A stretch of DNA of 64,000 nucleotides. Origin: Trichosphaerium sp. ATCC 40318 (taxonomy: Eukaryota; Protista; Tubulinea). The position numbers were made by a program, and so were the translations under genes. Position 1 is the first letter of the stretch. Each line of letters starts with the position of its first letter. The stretch is taken from positions 186,001 through 250,000 of the forward strand of contig JALMLS010000065.1 in NCBI GenBank assembly GCA_038496445.1, given 5' to 3'. Shown here one piece after another: positions 6,831 through 48,636 of the stretch. Under the pieces are notes generated by a model, which made no database searches, was not told where the DNA came from, and saw only the letters and a program-made list of their open reading frames with translations.

Positions 6831-8198
6831 AAATTATTGACTGTTTGCTGTGGTGCCAAAACAGGCAAATTAAACGATTAAATGCTGCACAAACATTTAT
6901 TCATTTATTTAATTTACATGTCTAACGTGAGTTGCTCTTTTTACTTTTGCAGGTTTCATTGTATAAAGTATTGCAAGAACAAAACCAGACTGGAGTATTC
7001 TTACACATATAATAAATACCCCGTGGAAAACAACATGTTCTTCTTTCACCTCTGGTATTGTTGTTAATTGTACAATAATGAATATACCCAAAACTATGAA
7101 CGCTAGACAGTAAATGACAGCTGTTAACACTACAAGCAAGTATATCTACAAAGAAAGTAAGATACCCTACACAGAAAGATAAACTAGCGTAACCTTTTCT
7201 CTTATTGGCTTGAACTCCTTACTAACGCTTAGTGACTTTCGTGTCTTGTATCCCATATAAAACAAGCTGAACCCAATGATAGTTGAAAATACAAGGTACA
7301 TTATATTGTACACTACTATGTTTGTCCTAAAAGCATCTCCTCGTAACATAGTAGCAAGTACAAAGAATGTAAGCTCCCACAATATAAGACCTGTAGAAAT
7401 TGTGTTTTTTTAGCGATTGATTTGTGGTTATAAAAATAGATTTTATTTCAAAATCACGTGCCTACAATTATTATCCAAGATAGGTAGTTGATAAAAAACC
7501 GCATAAAATGCCCTGGTCTTGGCTCAACCAACGCCCTTAAAGGCAAAGTGTTAATCTATTGGAAATACTGTTTTACACTAAAACGTACCAAAGTCGCAAC
7601 GTAAGAACCGACGTTGGGTACAGTGCCAAGTTACCAAGAGAACTCAGAGCACCCGCTGCTATCCAAGATATGTTTCGTGTATTTAGTGGATCAAAAATAG
7701 CAGAGATTGTCCGCACTGAAAGCGTTAGAAGCCACAGTACTCAAAATATCGTTTTAAAAAGGCCCGAAATGTTTGCGTACCCACACAAAATAGGAGGACA
7801 GACGCCCATAGAAACTTGATGGTTATGCGCTTATGATTATACGGCGGTTTGAAGATCTCAAACCAAATGATCGCGTACCTTTTATTTAACGTTAAAAAGC
7901 TGTTACCTGTTTTAAATGTATTGTACATTGTGTAGAGAGTAAGGACACCAAACCATAGTCCAAAACAGATGTTGTACACCAAAACGAATGTATCTTGCTT
8001 CTTGTTACAACCCAAAATCATGTGATGCTAAATATTGGCGTACCTGAAGCTTTGAATTCGCACCTAGGTAATTGTTTTAATCTTGCTTTCATTTATTGGG
8101 TACCATTCTCCTGCACGCCCGTCAAAGCATGTACATAATCCTTGGTAGCATATACCGCCATCAAAGCAGTTATTGTCTAAGCACGTGATGTTACTCAT
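6820..8198 (-). CDS. EGF-like domain + multi-pass (about 7TM) membrane protein, copy 2 (tandem duplicate)
   Basis: MSNITCLDNNCFDGGIC..; about 1.3 kb near-identical to 4720-6100 including introns. Confidence 0.65.
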
Positions 8199-8738
8199 TA
8201 TTCTACACAATCGTTAAAGATTGTTCAAAAAAGCACATTGCAGTTCTGATTGTGGTTTGAAAATAAAAGGGACAACCAGATATATGTCACAACAGTATGG
8301 GAGTACAACACCTGCATAATAGCAATTTTGCGAAGCACCTGGCACCTTTCGAGTACTGAAAAAGTGCTTTTGCTCCAAATAACGACAATACTGATCTTTT
8401 TGCTGCCCTTCTTGGGCACTTTTTTTCGAAATTACAGCGGATCAGGGTTTACAATACTCTTTGCATAACGTGATTATGTATTGGCGTTTGAAGAAACCAC
8501 GTGTTAAGATGCCTTGTTGCACAACATTACTTCGAAAAAGAACACATTTTTAAGTCAACCTTCGCTCTAATCAGAATCGAACTCTTTTGAAGAATTGTTG
8601 AATCCATCAAACTATTCGATCAATAATACTAATTGGTTGGCTATAAACTCAAACACCGTACGTCATTTTTGGAAAGTTAACTTAACTACTAGTGATAAGC
8701 ATGGTGAGCTTCTTCAATCGTCAAGCTAACAGTCTAAG

Positions 8739-31027: not shown

Positions 31028-31787
31028 ATGGAAATACCTTTAGAGTTCAAAAACACATGCTACGTTAAGCCGAAAGTATTTAACGACACAGAATGCGACA
31101 ACCTCATTAAACGTATTCAAAACACCACAAACATTAACACCACACGTCCTGACTCTCTTGATTCTGAAATTAAGCGAATAGTTGGTAGAACATCACTAAA
31201 AGACCCTAAACTTGCAGAATGGCTATATGAGCGTAGGAGACTGTTGTCCGACGACATGGGTTCAGAAGAAAGAGGATTCGACTATGGGACCATGCGCTAA
31301 GGGTAATTGGAAGATACATAGCGTAGATCACCGTATTCAGCTTTACAAGTACAAGGACGAAGGAATATTCTCAAAACACCGTGATGGACCAACATACCAT
31401 AGTCCTGACTTGAGATCACTGTTCACTGTACTTGTATACCTCAACGATGACTATAAAGGTGGTCAAACAATAGCTTATACAGATGACGAAGATAAAAGGT
31501 TTGTTGTGCCGAATGAGCGTGGTTCTTGCTTTGCAATGCTACAGAGGCAGTTGCATGAAGGTAGTAGGGTTTTGGAAGGAACAAAGTACCTTCTTAGATG
31601 TGATGTACTCTATGAAAGAAAAGAAGATAATACACATCTTGAATCATTTGATGGATTGAAAGAATCAGAAAAAGCTAAGAAATGGTTTGATTTAGCATCA
31701 GCAATAGAGCTTTCTGGTTATCCTAGGAAGAGTATTGATTACTATAAGAAGGCTTATAAGCTTGATCCAAATGTAGGAGCGGAGTAA
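31028..31787 (+). CDS. Prolyl-4-hydroxylase-like 2OG-Fe(II) oxygenase with C-terminal TPR-like helices; one frameshift near 31232
   Basis: VFNDTECDNLIK, LAEWLYER; then FSKHRDG, TVLVYLNDDYKGGQT, LHEGSRVLEGTKYLLRCDV, YYKKAYKLDP in a different frame. Confidence 0.8.
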
Positions 31788-40484: not shown

Positions 40485-40810
40485 ATCGCAACGTAGATAC
40501 AATTTGGTTGTGCCCATTATGAGCTACATAGTTTTAATGTGGGCGACATGTATTGTATATGATGTTACCCGCATTAATCAAAGCTGTGCGTCCACCTTCT
40601 ATCAACAGCCTCAATATTGGTATTGGCATCGATTAGCATTGCTACAATTTTTCCATGTCCGTATCGTGCTAAATAATGTGACCTTTCATCCTATGTCATT
40701 ACCTGCACATATCAAACTTGTATCTCCATATCTATCAACAGCATCAATATTGCCATTGGATTCGATTAACTTTGGTATAATTTCAGCATGGCCATTTGTT
40801 GCTATGATTG
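40485..40810 (-). pseudogene. Ankyrin-repeat gene fragment with +1 frameshift
   Basis: ATNGHAEIIPKLIESNGNIDAVDRYGDTSLICA / ARYGHGKIVAMLIDANTNIEAVDR(+1)GGRTALINA / AHNGHNQIVSTLR*. Confidence 0.65.
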
Positions 40811-41169
40811 GTTAGCTATTTACGCACCAACCAATACAAATCTGCGAGCAATCACAAGTTCAATTACACCGACTTCGGATGATAGATAGGGTTGGTTCTT
40901 CAAGTGTTAGATATTAGGGTTTTTTGTCACTCTGGTTCACAGGATTGTAACGGTTCAATCAGTAAATCAAACGTTTATTAAATAAGTCAACGTAATTATT
41001 TACCAAGTGGATAAAAAACGATTCTACCCTTTCCACCACTACGTTCTATACTCCCGGTATGGTACAACAGTAGTTAATAGTTTAAAAAACACAAGTATGC
41101 ATAAAACATACATTTTATGGTTATTCTAGTAACTAACGTGCGTCAATAAGCTTACTAGCTGTCAATAAG

Positions 41170-44100
41170 ATGAATGAAATGAATCCTACTTCAAACAAGA
41201 AAAGTACGCCCAAACGACCATCCAAAACGTTAAAAAGCAACGTGCTTATACTAAAACCAACATATTGGCGATTTTAAAACGTTATTCCAAATCTGCAGGT
41301 GTCACTTTTTTTTTTTTTGACATTCTTTAATTATAGAGCTGTTACAGACATGGACGAGGCCACCTGTACGCGATTCATATTTTAAAAAAAAGTCTAAAGA
41401 GATTTTTTATTTTTGATGTTTAACGATTTTTTTTGAACAGACTCCTTGCTCTACACGCAAAACAGTGAATGATACAGAATTGTATCAAGTGACAGACATC
41501 AAACTGTTCACCAAAATGCTAAACTGTACACATTTTGGTCTCTCAATGCTTGTACGTCGTTTATTGTTGTTAAAACAGGTTTTTTTTTTGGCCTTCTCTT
41601 TGTTAGGTTAGTTGACTTGTTTTCAAGTGTACTGGCACTTCAGGATTTATGTGTATATCTGTACCAGAGGTTACCGTTCTGTATATAATTGATTTGTCTC
41701 ACCCAGACGTTAACGAGCTACAACAACCTTTTGGAAATCCCAAAGTGATGAAAATAATGTTTGAGCACGTGCTTGATTTTTTCGACCTACTTATCATCTG
41801 ATGTTTCTCTATTCAGCTTGGAAGACATAGTATTAAAACTTAGAGCAGAAACAAGCTTAAAACTTGTGAATGTATTTGATCTGAAGTTAGCCACACAGCA
41901 GAAACATGGTATGAACTTTCGTTTTTTGGTTTTTTTTTTTCACTCTTGTGGAAGGTATTGTGGACATGGTTTCTGCTTATGAAAACTTTCTTGATATTTC
42001 TATAAGCACTGAAGCTATTGGGTTGAGTATTGATAGGGAAATCAAACAATTAGAACCGATAACAAAGAGGAATATCCAAAAGATTTGCTATTATATCCTA
42101 CCACTTTATCACGTTGCCTGTAAGGGTTTAGAGGAAGGAACGTAATTTATGACATCACTGTATTATTTATTTCTCTTCTAATACACTTATTAGATATTAA
42201 TAAATTGTGGATGGAGTCACAAGACATTAATGAGGTATGGCGTTCTTTATGTTCATGAACATCTTAACATTTTTGATAGAAAATGGCTATTCCCTCTCTG
42301 TTACCTGTGCAAACTACTCCACAACCTATGCAAATGTGTCTTCCTGTAAGAATAGAAACGCAAGAGGTATAAGTCAAGTAAAAGCTACTCTTGTTAGTAA
42401 CGTTGCAATAGGACGAGAGCATGCCGCAACTTTTAAAAGCTACTACAAATAATAGACCTACCAACAAGTCTGTAAACAATAATTATATAACCAAGTTAAA
42501 CACACTTTGCCAACAAAACAAGTGGGTCCCGAAATACAGGTATATTTCAGTACTTTCTTTGATGTATTTTTCTTATTTTTTTCTGTAGTAATAGCACAGC
42601 TAATGACATGTTCGTTGTAACAGTATGTAGCCACAATTCACGATTCATATTACCTGTTGTTCATTTTTTGGTTAGGTAAACGTGCAAATGGGACAAAACT
42701 CGGAACCTGTAAAGTGTGATGCGGATGGGAAAACTAGGAAAGAAGCAAAAGAAAAAGCGGCAAAAGCAATGTATGAACTACTTTGTCAATCGTCATCACC
42801 AGCACGTGACCATAAACAGAGTCGGAAACGTAAAGGTAATCGTATAGATATAGATGTATATTGTACTTACATTGGAACTATAGCCACTGCAGAAGCGTCA
42901 CCCGACCTTGAATCTGGGTTTGCTATGTGTAGAACTTGTGATGCAAAATTGTTTCCCATTAAATACTTGACGATGAATGGCAACAATCTTAATTGGAATA
43001 CTGCTTTTAGTGATGAATTCAAACACCTAAAGAGTATTACTAAAATTCCACATCCAAAGCGCCAGAGTGAGCCTAACAAAATAACAAAGTTGAGGTGCGC
43101 TAAGTGTAATGGAGATGTTGGTATCATATGGAAGTTGGATGGTACGGTTTTTTTTGGAATGTTTTTTTGACAGGATGTCTTATCTTCTTTAATAGGTACT
43201 GTGATGACTACTTTTAAGCATAATACATTACGTAATAATAGTGCGTATGGATATACTTCTATCAAGCAGTGGTTATCTTGTAGTAAATCAACAAAAAAAC
43301 CTAAAACACAAATTGTTTAACTAAAATTGTCGTCTTTTTATCTTATGTTTTTTTTCTTCAGTGCTCGCTACCGTCCGCAACAAACGCTCTAAGACTACTC
43401 ACCAAACCACATCACCAAAATTAAAGCCACTGAGCACCACAAATGCAAATGAAGAAGAAAAACAAAGCAGGTTTCTTTTAGAGCTTCCTGAAACGCTTCA
43501 ACTGGCGGAAAAAGCATTCTCAAAACTTTCTTACAAAAACACAGTACAATTCATGCCAGCAAAAAAATTTTACTGCTATCTTGTGACTATAGATAGTCCA
43601 ATCCTTCAAAACGTACGCCCATGTTATTATTCCACCTTGAAATTAAAACAAAGAGTTGTAGATGCCAAAGTATGATTTTATTCCTTCCGATTTACAATGG
43701 GACTCATATGTTTTGTTGATGAAAGATAAGATGTACATTGCCCCTCTCAAGTTTGGTAAAGGAGATACAACAGCTTCTGTAATTCTGTTAGGACCAAAGG
43801 CACGTGTTAATTAGGTAGTCTCCTTCTTACAGAAGCTTATATTTTGGGTATAGTCGTTTTCTGCGCCTGAAATACAACAACTTCTGTCATATCACAATGT
43901 ATTATATTCTGGTTTTATGAGATACCCAATAGACAGTGAATACAATCGTACCACGTACAAAAAGAAAGTAAAGACATACATATTGATCATGTGATTAGGA
44001 AAATAAAAAACAGTGGTAGGCCTTCAGAAACAGCTATTGTAGCACTTGGGTTTAAGGTACTCTTTTTTGATTCATCTACTGTCTTACTTGTTACACCCCA

Positions 44101-46186
44101 AGGGTCAAGATTACAAAAATACCTTCGTCGATTTAAGGAAGATGAATAGAATATTTGGAGAAACCGCAGGAGAAAGTTTGCTTGATATAATCAATAACAA
44201 ATCATGTGCGCTATACTGTTTTTTGAGAGTCTTTTTTTTGACGGTTTTAGTGGATAATAAACGACTTTTGAGTAACAGAATTTGCTGTACAACATACAAT
44301 AGTGCATACTATTCAATTAATAGAGTCGATCATAGTATCAACCCTACATCCAAGACACATTTTGCGCCTAGTAAAGAACCTACAAAAAAACTTTGTCTAA
44401 CGTTTTCTTGATTTAGACAAAACATACGCAGGGTATATCAAAGAAATCTATAAACATAATGTCACGGATCTATCCCAACCTATGATTTTAACAGGTGGTA
44501 AAGAAAGTACGAGAAAGGATAAGTTAGTTGGATTTTGGTTAACTTTTTTTTGAAAAAGGCTGCCCCAAAAGTAGACATCCAAAGCTTATCCCAGAATTTT
44601 GCTTAGTATTACCTATAAGTGCTGATATAAAGATATTATCATTTACTATACTGAAGATACTTTTTGAAAACCTTAATACACTGTATTGTTTCTACAAAGA
44701 AGCAGAGGAATGGCAAGAAACAACCTTCCAACATTACAAAAACTTGAAACTTGACAATCAACAACTACTAAAAAAAGTACGTTACCTCCAACCTTTTATG
44801 ACATGTTAGAATGAATCAGACATAGTACAAAGCGTATTGACTCTGTATGTTAAGCTTTTATCAATGCTAGTCTTCTCAAAACTCAGTAATGTCAAAATCT
44901 TTCTTAGCTAATTTTTTTTGTTTGCTTAACTATTTTGTTTTTTAAGGTATTCACACTTCCTTCATATGCAAATGAAAATGAAGTTAACTTAATAAGAAAT
45001 ACATCAAGTAATCAAGCTTTGGAATGGCTTGGAGACGGTATTCTTAAATTTATAAGTTGTTTATACATTTATCAAAAATATCCAAATCAACAACCAGATG
45101 CTCTCACAAGTAGGACTACCAAATACTTGAGTAATAAGAGCCTCAAAAAGAAAGGCAAGAAGATATCTATATTCAATAGCAAACATATTTTAAGTAGTGC
45201 CACAGTGAGTTATTTGAAACAAGATCGTCAACTTTTTTTGTTTGCTTACAACTTTTTTTTTTAAAATAGAATGATGTCCCTTCAGGAGAGAATATGAAGG
45301 CTCCAGCAGATTGTATGGAAGCGTTCATAGGTGATAATATTTCTTAGTATTAAATTTTTATGTTAAAGCTAAATATAGGTGCTTTGTATCTCGAAAAAGG
45401 ACTTGAAGCTGCTGCAAAGTTTATATCTGTATTCATTTTTGAAGATGACAATTTTTCAACGGATGCTCTTTGTAAACCTCAAAGAATACATTCAAGGGAT
45501 ATTGAAGGCATAAAAGAATCCAAAGAAGTTATTGGACTACTTACAAGACTTGGAATAAAGACGCAGTATCCTCAACTATACCAGAAAGCTTTTATTCACA
45601 AAACTCATCCTTCATTTGACATTTGTCAATCTTATGAGAGAATGGAGTTTCTAGGTATGTTTATAACATGTGTCCCACTATTCAATCCAATTACAATAAC
45701 ATAGGTGATGCTGTACTACAGTTTTTAAGTTCAGTGTTTGTCTTCCATGAGCTCAAGGACAACATGTCTGATGCAAAAGGACTTTCTTCTGGGATCGCTC
45801 CTGAAGGAATTCTTACACTTAAACGCAAGGCTATTGTCCAAAATGATACACTCAAGGATGTGTGTATTAATCTTGGCATGGAAAAGTGCATAAAGAAAGC
45901 AGAAAACGTAACAAATGACAAGATTTACGGAGATGTGGTTGAAGGTAAACACTTTTTTTTTGTTGACCTTTTTGTGGGTTTTTTTATAACTGCTTTTTGA
46001 AGCTTTTATCTGTGCATTGTACTTTGATAAAGGACTTAAGTATGATAAACAAAACAATATGCATACTTTATCAACAGGGTTCCTTGTAAAGAATTTATAT
46101 CCACTAAAAGGTAAGCCCAACTTTGATATTTTTTGTGTTGTTCAGTTGGCTAATTATCTAAAGACAAGCGATGCATATTTTCTTAA
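41170..46186 (+). CDS. Dicer-like RNase III protein: pseudo-exonuclease, dsRBD, RIG-I-like CTD, platform/PAZ, RNase IIIa, RNase IIIb (start uncertain, 40880-41350)
   Basis: RNase IIIa NQALEWLGDGILK..ADCMEAFIGALY; IIIb YERMEFLGDAVLQ..YGDVVEAFICALY; PAZ TYAGYIKEIYKHNVTDLSQPMI..LIPEFC; dsRBD NYITKLNTLCQ..GKTRKEAKEKAAKAMY. Confidence 0.9.
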
Positions 46187-46673
46187 AACAATCTCACCAA
46201 TAAACACATGAGTAGCACATTTTTTATTTACGAAGATACTACAAATCCATAGGATGTAAAAGGTTCATACCCTTTTGAATAAACGAATAGATTTTTTATT
46301 TGACCAGATTTTTGGCGAAAATGCAGTTGAGGAAAGAATGTTGAGAGTATGGGGAAGTACATTGTCTAAGTGCAACAAGGGATGATGACAGAGATTGGTA
46401 TGAACAAAAACCAGCTCTTACTTGAAGGGCTACAAGGATCCAGTCTAAGCACCTTTGCTCCACTCAGAGGACTAAGTTGTAAAAAGTGCAGGAAACAAAA
46501 AAGTGCTGGTATCAGTTGCCTACGTGAATAAACACCATATAGAAAGGCTACATTGCCTTGCTTAAATAAGCTTCAAAACACAAACAAATACCCTCTTCCA
46601 TTGGTATGTTTCGAAGCCAATATTTTTATCAAGTAGAAAAGGATGGTTTCTTTTAGATTTTTGTTTTGAAAAA

Positions 46674-48636
46674 TTACATTTGTTTGTTTGCTTTTCGAGC
46701 CATGTTACGCTTCTTTTGTTCTATGGCAGTAAGTCTTTTATCTCTTCTCGTTTTTCTTCTTTCCAATAAGATCCATGCTGCAACTGAAACAAGGAAAATA
46801 ACAAGTAATGTGCGGATAGGCTGAAATGTCTAAAAAAAGAAATAAGGTTAAGCCAACTCTTTTTTGAATAAAGTCAATGTTTCTTTACTTACCTCCTTTT
46901 CTACGCCACATTCTGATTCCCAATCATCTGGTATACCTGGTTGTAATCCACTAGAGAGTAAATAAGATTTTTTAAGGGATCAGTACGTCCATACTTAGCT
47001 AGTTTGTCAAGCGGACACATTTCACAATCAGAATAGATTGGCATTGGCTTTTTCCCAAATGGGCCGTCTCCGTCGTAAACGACAGATACTGCTAATCCAT
47101 CAACAGTTTCGTATAATTCAAAAGCGATAAAACTCGAGTAATCAGGAACCTCTAATTCAAAAAGTCAGTAACAGAAAGACACAGTGAGTCGGATTCAGTG
47201 AACATTACGTACCAAACTGTGTAATATTCATGGCAGCAAATAAAGCCAATAAAGTTCCATCATGTCCTGACCATAAGCTGAATTTGGGTCCATCTGGTAT
47301 AGATGGTTGATTATGGCCGAATTGTTTGAGAACCTTGAATTGTTTCAGTTTTTTTATAATGAGCAAAAATAGTATTAATAAAGCCTGTCTATACCTCTTT
47401 CAACACTGGACCGCCTTAAATAAAACTTAGGTATATAATTTATAGTCATTATCAGTTACCTGCAAGGCGTCCCCAGAATGGTGTCAGAAATTTTCTGCGC
47501 AGCTACAAGTACTTGGGTTAGAAGCGCAGGACTAGTTTCTGAATGAATTTTTTTGTACTTACAACCCATTCTCTAATGCCCTTTATTTCTTCTCTCATTT
47601 CGTTGGTTATATCTTCTTCATCCCATGTTTCTTTACCGTGAATACCTTCACATTTCAGAAGTGAACCAAGACCTAAAATACAGTCAACAAAATTGAATCA
47701 CAAGCCTGATGAGTCATCATTTCCAAACAAAAGAAAAATGCTCACCTGACACGTCCTTGAGTGTAGGCTCCTCAATTCCAATTACAGGAGCAAGGTCTCT
47801 CAATAATCTTTCGTGCTTTTTAGTTTTTTCGTTCCATTCTGGGCTTGTCTTGTACTGCTTTTGAAGCGTTTTTAATCTGTGTATGTCAAATGAGTTTCAA
47901 ACACGAAAAAAATAAGAAAAAAATTGTAAGCTTACTTTGGACAGTTCTTGTAGCTACGAAGTAATCTATCTTGCTTTGCAGGTACAGAGTGTATTGGTAC
48001 AGGTCTTATACCTCCTGGTAGTCCATATTCAGTAAGACCAGGTTCTATTTTAGGTCCTGAACCTATTGATTGTTAGAAACAATCGAAGGAGGCCATGAGT
48101 GATTGTTATCGGCGAAAAAGCTCAACATCGATTTGATCTTTTGTAAAAAGTAATACCAGGTGGATACATGCCCATCATAAAACTCTAGATGATGTGAGTG
48201 TTGGTTTGACGTCATTTAGGGGGAGCTTACGTATGCACTTTCCAAAGTTCGTTCTGCGGCTGTAGATTGTACGTATACGTCATCAATATGATATTTAGGC
48301 GACAGTAAGCCTAGTTCATCAATGTATCGCTTGCGAAACGTTTTGCCAAGTTCGTAATGCTGACTCATCCCAAGTCCTGTTAATTGACCCATTCCACGCT
48401 CAGACCAATCACTTTTCATGTTTGGAAAGCTTTTTGTTGGCGTTCTAGTTCAACAATTAAATATAGTCGCTAAACGGTTAAAATATCATACCTGTCACCA
48501 TGTCGTGTGATTACAATAGCTTTTAAGAGATCATAGTCTTCAGCGCATACCTATCTTCGTTAGAACGCGTAATTTATTTACTTTTAGGTACCAGATATAT
48601 AACTACAGCCAATGCAGCAAGAAGTAGAGCTCTCAT
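46674..48636 (-). CDS. Histidine acid phosphatase (lysosomal/prostatic type) with C-terminal TM helix
   Basis: Signal MRALLLAALAVV; RHGDRTP, GQLTGLG, ERTLESA, SGHDGTL; TM TLLVIFLVSVAAWILL. Confidence 0.9.

Follow-up and report, generated by a model that had tools for sequence, protein, structure and literature searches.

Little is understood of the way in which Dicers without a helicase select and bind their substrates. The helicases of canonical Dicers and of RIG-I-like receptors (RLRs) have a common ancestry, and in C. elegans DRH-1 acts with DCR-1, i.e., an RLR-type end-binding domain cooperates with Dicer. Positions 41170–46186 (+ strand) of the DNA analysed here, a 64,000-nucleotide stretch from Trichosphaerium sp. 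which we call the window, raise the question of whether such binding domains can be part of the Dicer itself. In GC content and intron sizes the stretch fits this marine amoeba. An earlier note, made from the letters of the sequence, had read the locus as a helicase-less Dicer preceded by a pseudo-exonuclease, a dsRBD and a RIG-I-like zinc domain. Our reading, to which we give a probability of roughly 0.6, is that one gene encodes a 1141-aa Dicer-like RNase III with a dsRBD and zinc head and a minimal Dicer tail.

The locus holds an intron-rich, expressed gene, represented by spliced cDNA contigs from two libraries (X1 and X3), which are 99+% identical to the window and have splice joints at GT..AG. 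The cDNA begins at 40980, where the loose end of the X3 contig is the SMART template-switch oligo. The 5' UTR runs from 40980 to 41169, read depth suggests an intron of ~90 nt within it, and the ATG at 41170 is the first in the spliced leader. At the other end, the joint of the last intron (46110|46164) is present in X1, X3 and the related organism X2, and the last exon (46164–46285) contains six codons, the stop codon (TAA, 46184–46186) and a 3' UTR of ~100 nt. A single 1141-aa ORF can be obtained between these ends by splicing 26 introns. All 12 introns of the N-terminal part are RNA-confirmed and the frame is kept throughout; they include 41204–41336, 41366–41440, 41552–41627, 41765–41816 (GC..AG) and 41909–41954.

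The C-terminal ~620 aa constitute a minimal Dicer, with a platform-like region, a PAZ-like domain, RNase IIIa and RNase IIIb. Both RNase III domains match Pfam Ribonuclease_3 when their exon ORFs are searched (E 5.9e-11 for RNase IIIa, 7.5e-7 for RNase IIIb), and their introns are RNA-confirmed. RNase IIIa (44947–45440) also matches the RNase III domains of Drosha and Dicer-2 in the PDB (E ~1e-8), and it carries the catalytic motifs ALEWLGDG (45016–45039, aa 844–851) and ADCMEAFIGA (45306–45383, aa 919–928). The corresponding motifs of RNase IIIb (45560–46110) are ERMEFLGDA (45636–45712, aa 1013–1021) and GDVVEAFICA (45929–46016, aa 1094–1103). The E..D and D..E set is therefore complete in both domains, as the earlier note had said.

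Upstream of RNase IIIa, the PAZ-like domain and connector (aa 644–820, 44103–44776) are suggested by Pfam PAZ matches on two exons scored singly (E 0.08 at profile positions 21–53 and E 0.019 at 63–89), which are colinear but sub-threshold, with 13.3 and 15.3 bits where the cut-off is 28.8. The motifs YNSAYYSINR, TYAGYIKEIY and LIPEFC lie in this region, and its PAZ-like motifs follow the expected order. One of its introns (44206–44250) is RNA-confirmed, while 44371–44416, 44507–44558 and 44777–44946 are consistent with X1 depth. The platform-like region (aa 545–643, 43662–44102) is drawn from open frames, coding scores and an X2 contig covering 43675–43797; its exon borders in 43854–44102 are predicted, and several alternatives keep the frame. 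The PAZ-like segment of the earlier note is weakly supported, by typical motifs in the expected order and by matches that stay sub-threshold.

What this Dicer lacks is also clear. No Walker A or DExD/H pattern occurs in the 1141-aa model and no exon matches a helicase family in Pfam. Further upstream exons are excluded by the cDNA 5' end at 40980, so there is no room for a helicase. A C-terminal dsRBD is likewise absent, since the ORF ends 16 aa past RNase IIIb, behind the RNA-confirmed last intron. Both absences had been claimed before, and the sequence supports reading the protein as a helicase-less Dicer-type enzyme with apparently intact catalytic sites. In Giardia intestinalis Dicer, platform, PAZ and connector are followed by RNase IIIa and RNase IIIb, and both the helicase and the C-terminal dsRBD are missing. 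This enzyme resembles our C-terminal ~620 aa in domain order and approximate size but is not known to have an N-terminal extension, dsRBD or zinc domain.

The head begins with a region of six exons (aa 1–196, 41170–42137) whose introns are RNA-confirmed and which matches no family. Its first ~195 aa are where a pseudo-exonuclease had been proposed, and that proposal found no backing: six tests (Pfam, PDB, RNase D pair and profile, ESM Atlas) came back blank. Pfam gave no exonuclease family on four N-terminal exons at E up to 10, no exonuclease was among the PDB phmmer matches of the N-terminal exons, and the ESM Atlas returned nothing for the largest of these exons. Pairwise comparison of the region with E. 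coli RNase D gave no signal, and an RNase D profile scored -1.1 bits, a value equalled by 73 of 500 shuffles; this profile is too narrow, because the homologues listed were near-identical enterobacterial RNase D only. Since the region was compared in pieces or with this narrow profile, a very diverged DEDD exonuclease relic may have been missed.

The dsRBD fared much better. It lies at aa 261–328, is encoded by three exons (42478–42783), and is a complete, canonical domain of the alpha-beta-beta-beta-alpha type, with a C-terminal helix of the KKxAK type. In a phmmer search of 1.84e9 proteins, the exon that carries its tail and the start of the zinc domain matched a PKR-like dsRBD-kinase (E 1.4e-5), and aa 240–343 of the spliced model align with the third dsRBD of this kinase over its entire length (22.9 bits). 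Pfam dsrm scores E 0.024 for the tail on the exon and E 1.2e-46 for the PKR-like protein itself. The N-terminal dsRBD of the earlier note is thereby confirmed.

Next comes a zinc domain (aa ~347–460, 42886–43281) with two CxxC pairs, at 42928–42939 and 43096–43107 (C361, C364, C417 and C420). Its best Pfam match is RIG-I_C-RD (PF11648; E 3.4e-4), at 21.2 bits and so below the 25.6 cut-off; this match comes from an 85-aa exon and spans profile positions 4–72 of 117, while the following 28-aa exon, scored alone against Pfam, has no match. Yippee-Mis18 (15.1 bits), At4g08330 beta-tent (14.3 bits) and SelR (13.0 bits) follow, and given this set of matches we class the domain as beta-tent-type. Human RIG-I CTD chains (2rmj and 7mk1) also align weakly and colinearly with the domain; the alignment runs through both CxxC pairs and, by our residue numbering, places lysines opposite the two lysines directly before the second pair. 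AlphaFold2, run without an alignment on a 164-aa read-through ORF, gave a mean pLDDT of 36.6, too low to be of use.

Of the earlier claim of a RIG-I-like zinc domain, the four-cysteine zinc domain stands, whereas a specific kinship to RIG-I is not established. One alternative is that the protein is indeed fused and its head is not an RNA-end sensor: the zinc domain would then be a generic beta-tent of the Yippee/Mis18/MsrB-like kind, serving in oligomerisation or protein binding, with the dsRBD perhaps dispensable. This would fit the four Pfam matches, which are all sub-threshold and come from different beta-tent families, and the ESM Atlas, which favours SelR/MsrB (SelR clusters only for the zinc exon, at 0.91, and nothing once SelR is excluded). 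Beta-tent families routinely cross-match at E 0.005–10, and the RIG-I regulatory domain is reported as detectable only in animals (PMC4287342). For the dsRBD, miRNA maturation by Dictyostelium DrnB proceeds without its dsRBD (PMC5056781). Against this, RIG-I_C-RD is the best match, its E-value is better than the usual cross-family range, it leads the next family by 6 bits, and the weak RIG-I CTD alignment is colinear with matched lysines.

Comparing the candidates by their features is instructive. Yippee/Mis18, MsrB (SelR) and CULT share with our domain two CxxC pairs ~50 residues apart, and it matches three of these families weakly, but none reaches its threshold, inspection by eye showed no MsrB-type catalytic motif, and the context is an RNA-processing enzyme. 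The RLR CTD shares the four cysteines and a length of ~115 aa, is the best Pfam match and aligns weakly and colinearly, but here no SF2 helicase is attached and the domain sits in cis on a Dicer. We regard the generic beta-tent as a possibility that falls somewhat short of an even chance. A true RLR-CTD homologue that was fused, together with the dsRBD, to a PAZ Dicer as a cis end selector replacing the helicase, with an antiviral or anti-transposon role in a host whose genome is rich in giant-virus genes, seems to us improbable.

Whether the head and the Dicer half belong to one protein depends on the join between them. The earlier note had placed the three N-terminal domains in one spliced frame, which the RNA-confirmed introns bear out for that part, and had inferred one polypeptide; the contigs of both libraries stop before the join, and no contig spans both halves. 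In X1, the N-terminal contig ends at 43267 and coverage resumes at ~44170 (no contig across 43268–44169); in X3, it ends at 43252 and coverage resumes at 45026 (none across 43253–45025). Both N-terminal contigs end 15–30 nt short of the proposed donor, without overhang. The join would be made by a 79-nt intron (43283–43361), which we infer from splice-site scores and phase in a stretch that no RNA contig covers. Its acceptor at 43361 has a score of 8.9, which puts it among the best 1% of AGs in the window. The donor at 43283 (GTAAAT) is in phase and weak, with a score of 3.2; GTAAAC at 45945, an RNA-confirmed donor, is of the same type. Another in-phase donor at 43241 (GTGCGT) has a higher score of 6.5, but both cDNA contigs read through it, so it was rejected as the main linking site.

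Beyond this intron lies a linker exon (43362–43612, aa 461–544). Its first in-frame ATG is at 43553, and the 63 codons before it have a held-out codon score of +0.48 per codon in frame versus 0.03 and -0.07 off frame, on a scale where true exons score 0.37–0.62 and introns and UTRs -0.4 to -1.0. The absence of stops in this stretch has P = 0.03 given its composition. Over the 126 nt of 43487–43612, an X2 contig differs at 3 sites, of which two are third codon positions. Elsewhere in the gene, the X2 3' UTR has at least three substitutions (4 differences counted) and an 11-nt deletion in ~100 nt, and X2 introns do not align with the window.

Two adjacent genes could also account for the contig pattern. 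The first would run from 41170 to the TAA at 43318–43320 (472 aa) and the second would be a minimal Dicer of ~618 aa starting at the ATG at 43553, with the intervening frame being due to chance or a relic. The contigs of both libraries leave the gap unbridged, the donor is weak, and the stop comes after the end of the zinc domain, as a natural C-terminus would. Depth rises along each half (7 to 8.5 to 13.6, then 0 to 6.9 to 13.2), and these two ramps look like two 3'-biased transcripts. A helicase-less Dicer of ~620 aa would also be close in size to Giardia Dicer.

Other observations count against a split. The stretch 43325–43553 has no in-frame ATG yet is coding-like, stop-free and conserved in X2, and the coding stretch begins at one of the window's strongest acceptors. 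Only 232 nt would be available for the 3' UTR of one gene and the promoter and 5' UTR of the next, the upstream ATGs at 43444 and 43450 would make a uORF, and a start at M525 would remove a predicted helix just upstream (judged by eye). The two halves also have near-equal contig depth in both independent libraries (13.6 versus 13.2, and 8–9.3 versus 8.9–9.2). We therefore consider two genes unlikely, and it is probable, on roughly two-to-one odds or slightly better, that both halves are fused in one polypeptide.

In the fused protein, splicing of the weak-donor intron 43283–43361 would unite the head with the Dicer half. PAZ would grip the 3' end of dsRNA, and RNase IIIa and RNase IIIb would form an intramolecular dimer in which both strands are cut. 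The dsRBD and zinc domain would provide dsRNA binding (possibly dsRNA-end binding) in cis, and the head would thus replace the binding that other Dicers draw from the helicase/DUF283, a C-terminal dsRBD or partner dsRBPs. If the linking intron is retained, the frame meets the in-frame TAA at 43318–43320, 36 nt downstream, and the product would be a 472-aa dsRBD-zinc protein, so the locus may yield two products, one short and one long. One may also speculate about an antiviral or end-sensing role.

The earlier note knew of no described protein with this architecture, and our search agrees for one part of it, the head. When 1.84 billion representative proteins, which do not include this genome's own, were searched exhaustively with HMMER, the dsRBD-tail/zinc exon had no orthologue among them, so the head is not detectably shared with the other proteomes of that library. 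A C2H2 zinc-finger protein was rejected as a relative of this exon, its match being cysteine-driven. Neither the zinc exon nor the RNase IIIa exon had a relative among viral contigs, and the metagenome scan yielded a single giant-virus contig, whose RNase III is of the ordinary one-domain kind. We found no paper naming Trichosphaerium together with Dicer, and the terms Dicer, RNase III and RIG-I are absent from the supplements of the genome paper.

The other part, a helicase-less amoebozoan Dicer with an N-terminal dsRBD, was already known in Dictyostelium DrnB (PMC5056781). According to the same paper, a Dicer with PAZ and helicase domains is missing from the D. discoideum genome. DrnB and DrnA share with our protein a pair of RNase III domains, the lack of a helicase and the position of a dsRBD on the N-terminal rather than the C-terminal side (PMC5056781). 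Compared by description, DrnB differs in that it has no PAZ, and neither a zinc beta-tent nor a region of ~260 aa before the dsRBD is described for it.

If the halves are separate genes, the locus holds a minimal Dicer beside a dsRBD-zinc protein and is of modest interest. If the zinc domain is a true relative of the RLR tail, an RLR-type CTD would have been found outside animals for the first time, and an RNA-end sensor would predate animals and be directly tied to RNAi. If the fusion is true, this protein would represent a different solution, i.e., a dsRBD and a zinc beta-tent attached to a minimal PAZ Dicer, and it would offer a simple system in which to ask what a Dicer's N-terminal module adds.

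The window's DNA is AT-rich and eukaryotic, with a GC content of about 0.33-0.40 around the gene and only short open frames, and it is compatible with the GC content of 37.7% and mean intron of 75 bp in the published Trichosphaerium genome (PMC10521059). Neither that paper nor its supplements mentions Dicer. We mapped the contigs of four public sequencing runs on window 40750-46700. Those from the runs X1 and X3 have 99+% identity to the window and skip short GT..AG stretches, so they represent spliced cDNA. One X3 contig has the SMART template-switch oligo as its loose end at 40980, which places a cDNA 5' end there. Run X2 comes from a related organism: its exons are 90-99% identical, its intron sequence does not align to the window, and it has loose ends at 41328 and 42558.

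On the + strand, the cDNA contigs confirm introns at 41204-41336, 41366-41440, 41552-41627, 41765-41816 (GC..AG), 41909-41954, 42138-42193, 42235-42279, 42367-42411, 42540-42588, 42623-42675, 42836-42883, 43142-43195, 44206-44250, 45205-45269, 45331-45378, 45655-45704, 45945-46002 and 46111-46163, and predicted + strand introns at 44371-44416, 44507-44558 and 44777-44946 are consistent with X1 depth per bin. Given inferred introns within 43283-44102, the result is a single 1141-aa ORF from ATG 41170, the first ATG in the spliced leader, to TAA 46184-46186, in agreement with the span of 41170-46186 proposed in the earlier note.

Some of these introns are non-canonical: besides 41765-41816, the 56-nt skip at 42138-42193 is best read as GA..AG (its sole AG-acceptor reading), and the predicted intron 43800-43853 is grouped with them. 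Donors here fit the pattern G[T/C/A]ACGT, most commonly GTACGY. The 48-nt intron at 42836-42883 is in frame and stop-free, and a bacterial-style ORF listing runs through it uninterrupted; its retention would add 16 aa to the linker between dsRBD and zinc domain. The 5' UTR (40980-41169) appears to hold an intron of roughly 90 nt with a donor near 41057, as a contiguous leader misfits both the X3 depth and the length of the X3 cDNA contig.

The C-terminal half is that of a Dicer without a helicase, much as the earlier note described it. The RNase IIIa and RNase IIIb exon ORFs match Pfam Ribonuclease_3 (E 5.9e-11 and 7.5e-7, respectively), and a PDB search with the former finds Drosha and Dicer-2 chains at E of about 1e-8. 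Each domain keeps all four catalytic acids. The protein ends 16 aa past RNase IIIb and therefore has no C-terminal dsRBD. Walker A and DExD/H motifs are absent from the whole 1141-aa model, and the cDNA 5' end at 40980 excludes space for a helicase. In the PAZ-like segment, two exons match the Pfam PAZ profile colinearly, at its positions 21-53 and 63-89, both below the threshold; behind them lies the motif LIPEFC, which is typical for PAZ-connector regions. A PAZ domain is likely here, not proven.

The head was said to combine a pseudo-exonuclease, a dsRBD and a RIG-I-like zinc domain. The first is not supported: the first ~195 residues gave no exonuclease signal in any test (Pfam exon by exon, PDB, E. 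coli RNase D, a narrow RNase D profile and ESM Atlas). The dsRBD is complete at residues 261-328; the exon with its last helix matches a PKR-like dsRBD-kinase (E 1.4e-5 among 1.84 billion proteins), and the spliced model aligns with the whole third dsRBD of that protein. The zinc domain (residues ~347-460) has two CxxC pairs 53 residues apart. RIG-I_C-RD is the best Pfam match of its 85-aa exon, but at 21.2 bits (E 3.4e-4) it is below the cut-off of 25.6, and other beta-tent families (Yippee-Mis18, At4g08330 beta-tent, SelR) follow; ESM Atlas features point to SelR/MsrB. Against the human RIG-I CTD, phmmer gives 12 bits, colinear across both cysteine pairs. Structure prediction without homologues gave no usable fold (pLDDT 36.6), and an exhaustive search of 1.84 billion proteins found no homologue of the dsRBD-tail/zinc exon. 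The RIG-I regulatory domain, Yippee/Mis18 and SelR-type families are reported to share the beta-tent fold and to match each other across families at E 0.005-10, with the RIG-I domain detected in animals only (PMC4287342). Judged by its sequence, the module is a beta-tent zinc domain; its nearest relative may be the RLR tail, a resemblance short of established homology.

Whether head and Dicer half form one polypeptide depends on an inferred 79-nt intron at 43283-43361. If it is retained and no further intron intervenes, TAA 43318 ends the frame, giving a 472-aa protein, which counts against fusion. So does the cDNA evidence. No X1 or X3 cDNA contig joins the halves: N-terminal contigs stop without overhang at 43267 (X1) and 43252 (X3), coverage restarts at about 44170 and 45026, respectively, and X1 depth shows two ramps (7, 8.5, 13.6, then 6.9, 13.2). 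For fusion, the AG at 43361 is in the top 1% of the window's acceptor scores, and the in-phase donor at 43283 (GTAAAT) is similar to the confirmed donor at 45945. The following exon runs for 63 codons before its first in-frame ATG, yet it is stop-free (P = 0.03) and, scored with the exon left out of the training set, looks coding in no frame but this one (+0.48 per codon). X2 differs at 3 positions in 43487-43612; about 100 nt of its 3' UTR contain no fewer than 3 substitutions and a deletion of 11 nt. The two halves are also equal in depth in both libraries. We put the probability of the fusion proposed in the earlier note at roughly 0.65-0.7. A weak 5' splice site at 43283 may compete with termination or priming within the retained intron, which is A-rich. 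The locus would then yield two products: a short protein with the dsRBD and zinc domain, and the long fusion to the Dicer half. This competition model fits all the evidence, for and against fusion.

Among metagenomic sequences, the RNase IIIb exon has a single relative (35% over 46 aa), an RNase III of the one-domain type that also has a dsRBD, at 7719-8513 of the contig L002 (14.6 kb). This contig is evidently from a giant virus, as it also codes for DnaJ, DUF5871, a helicase of 1261 aa and the C-terminal domain of a P11 minor capsid protein. In the window, the 191-aa ORF at 31212-31787 has a TPR repeat behind a domain of the 2OG-Fe(II) oxygenase type (E 1.7e-8). A convergent gene on the minus strand (46904-48449) ends a few hundred bases from the 3' end of the studied gene, and its ORF pieces, judged by eye, may be those of a histidine-phosphatase-type enzyme.

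Among known systems, Giardia Dicer carries a PAZ domain and is not known to have a dsRBD. DrnB of Dictyostelium, an amoebozoan Dicer, lacks both helicase and PAZ and has its dsRBD on the N-terminal side (PMC5056781). The Trichosphaerium protein would unite an N-terminal dsRBD with a PAZ domain, together with a zinc beta-tent domain and an N-terminus of ~260 aa.
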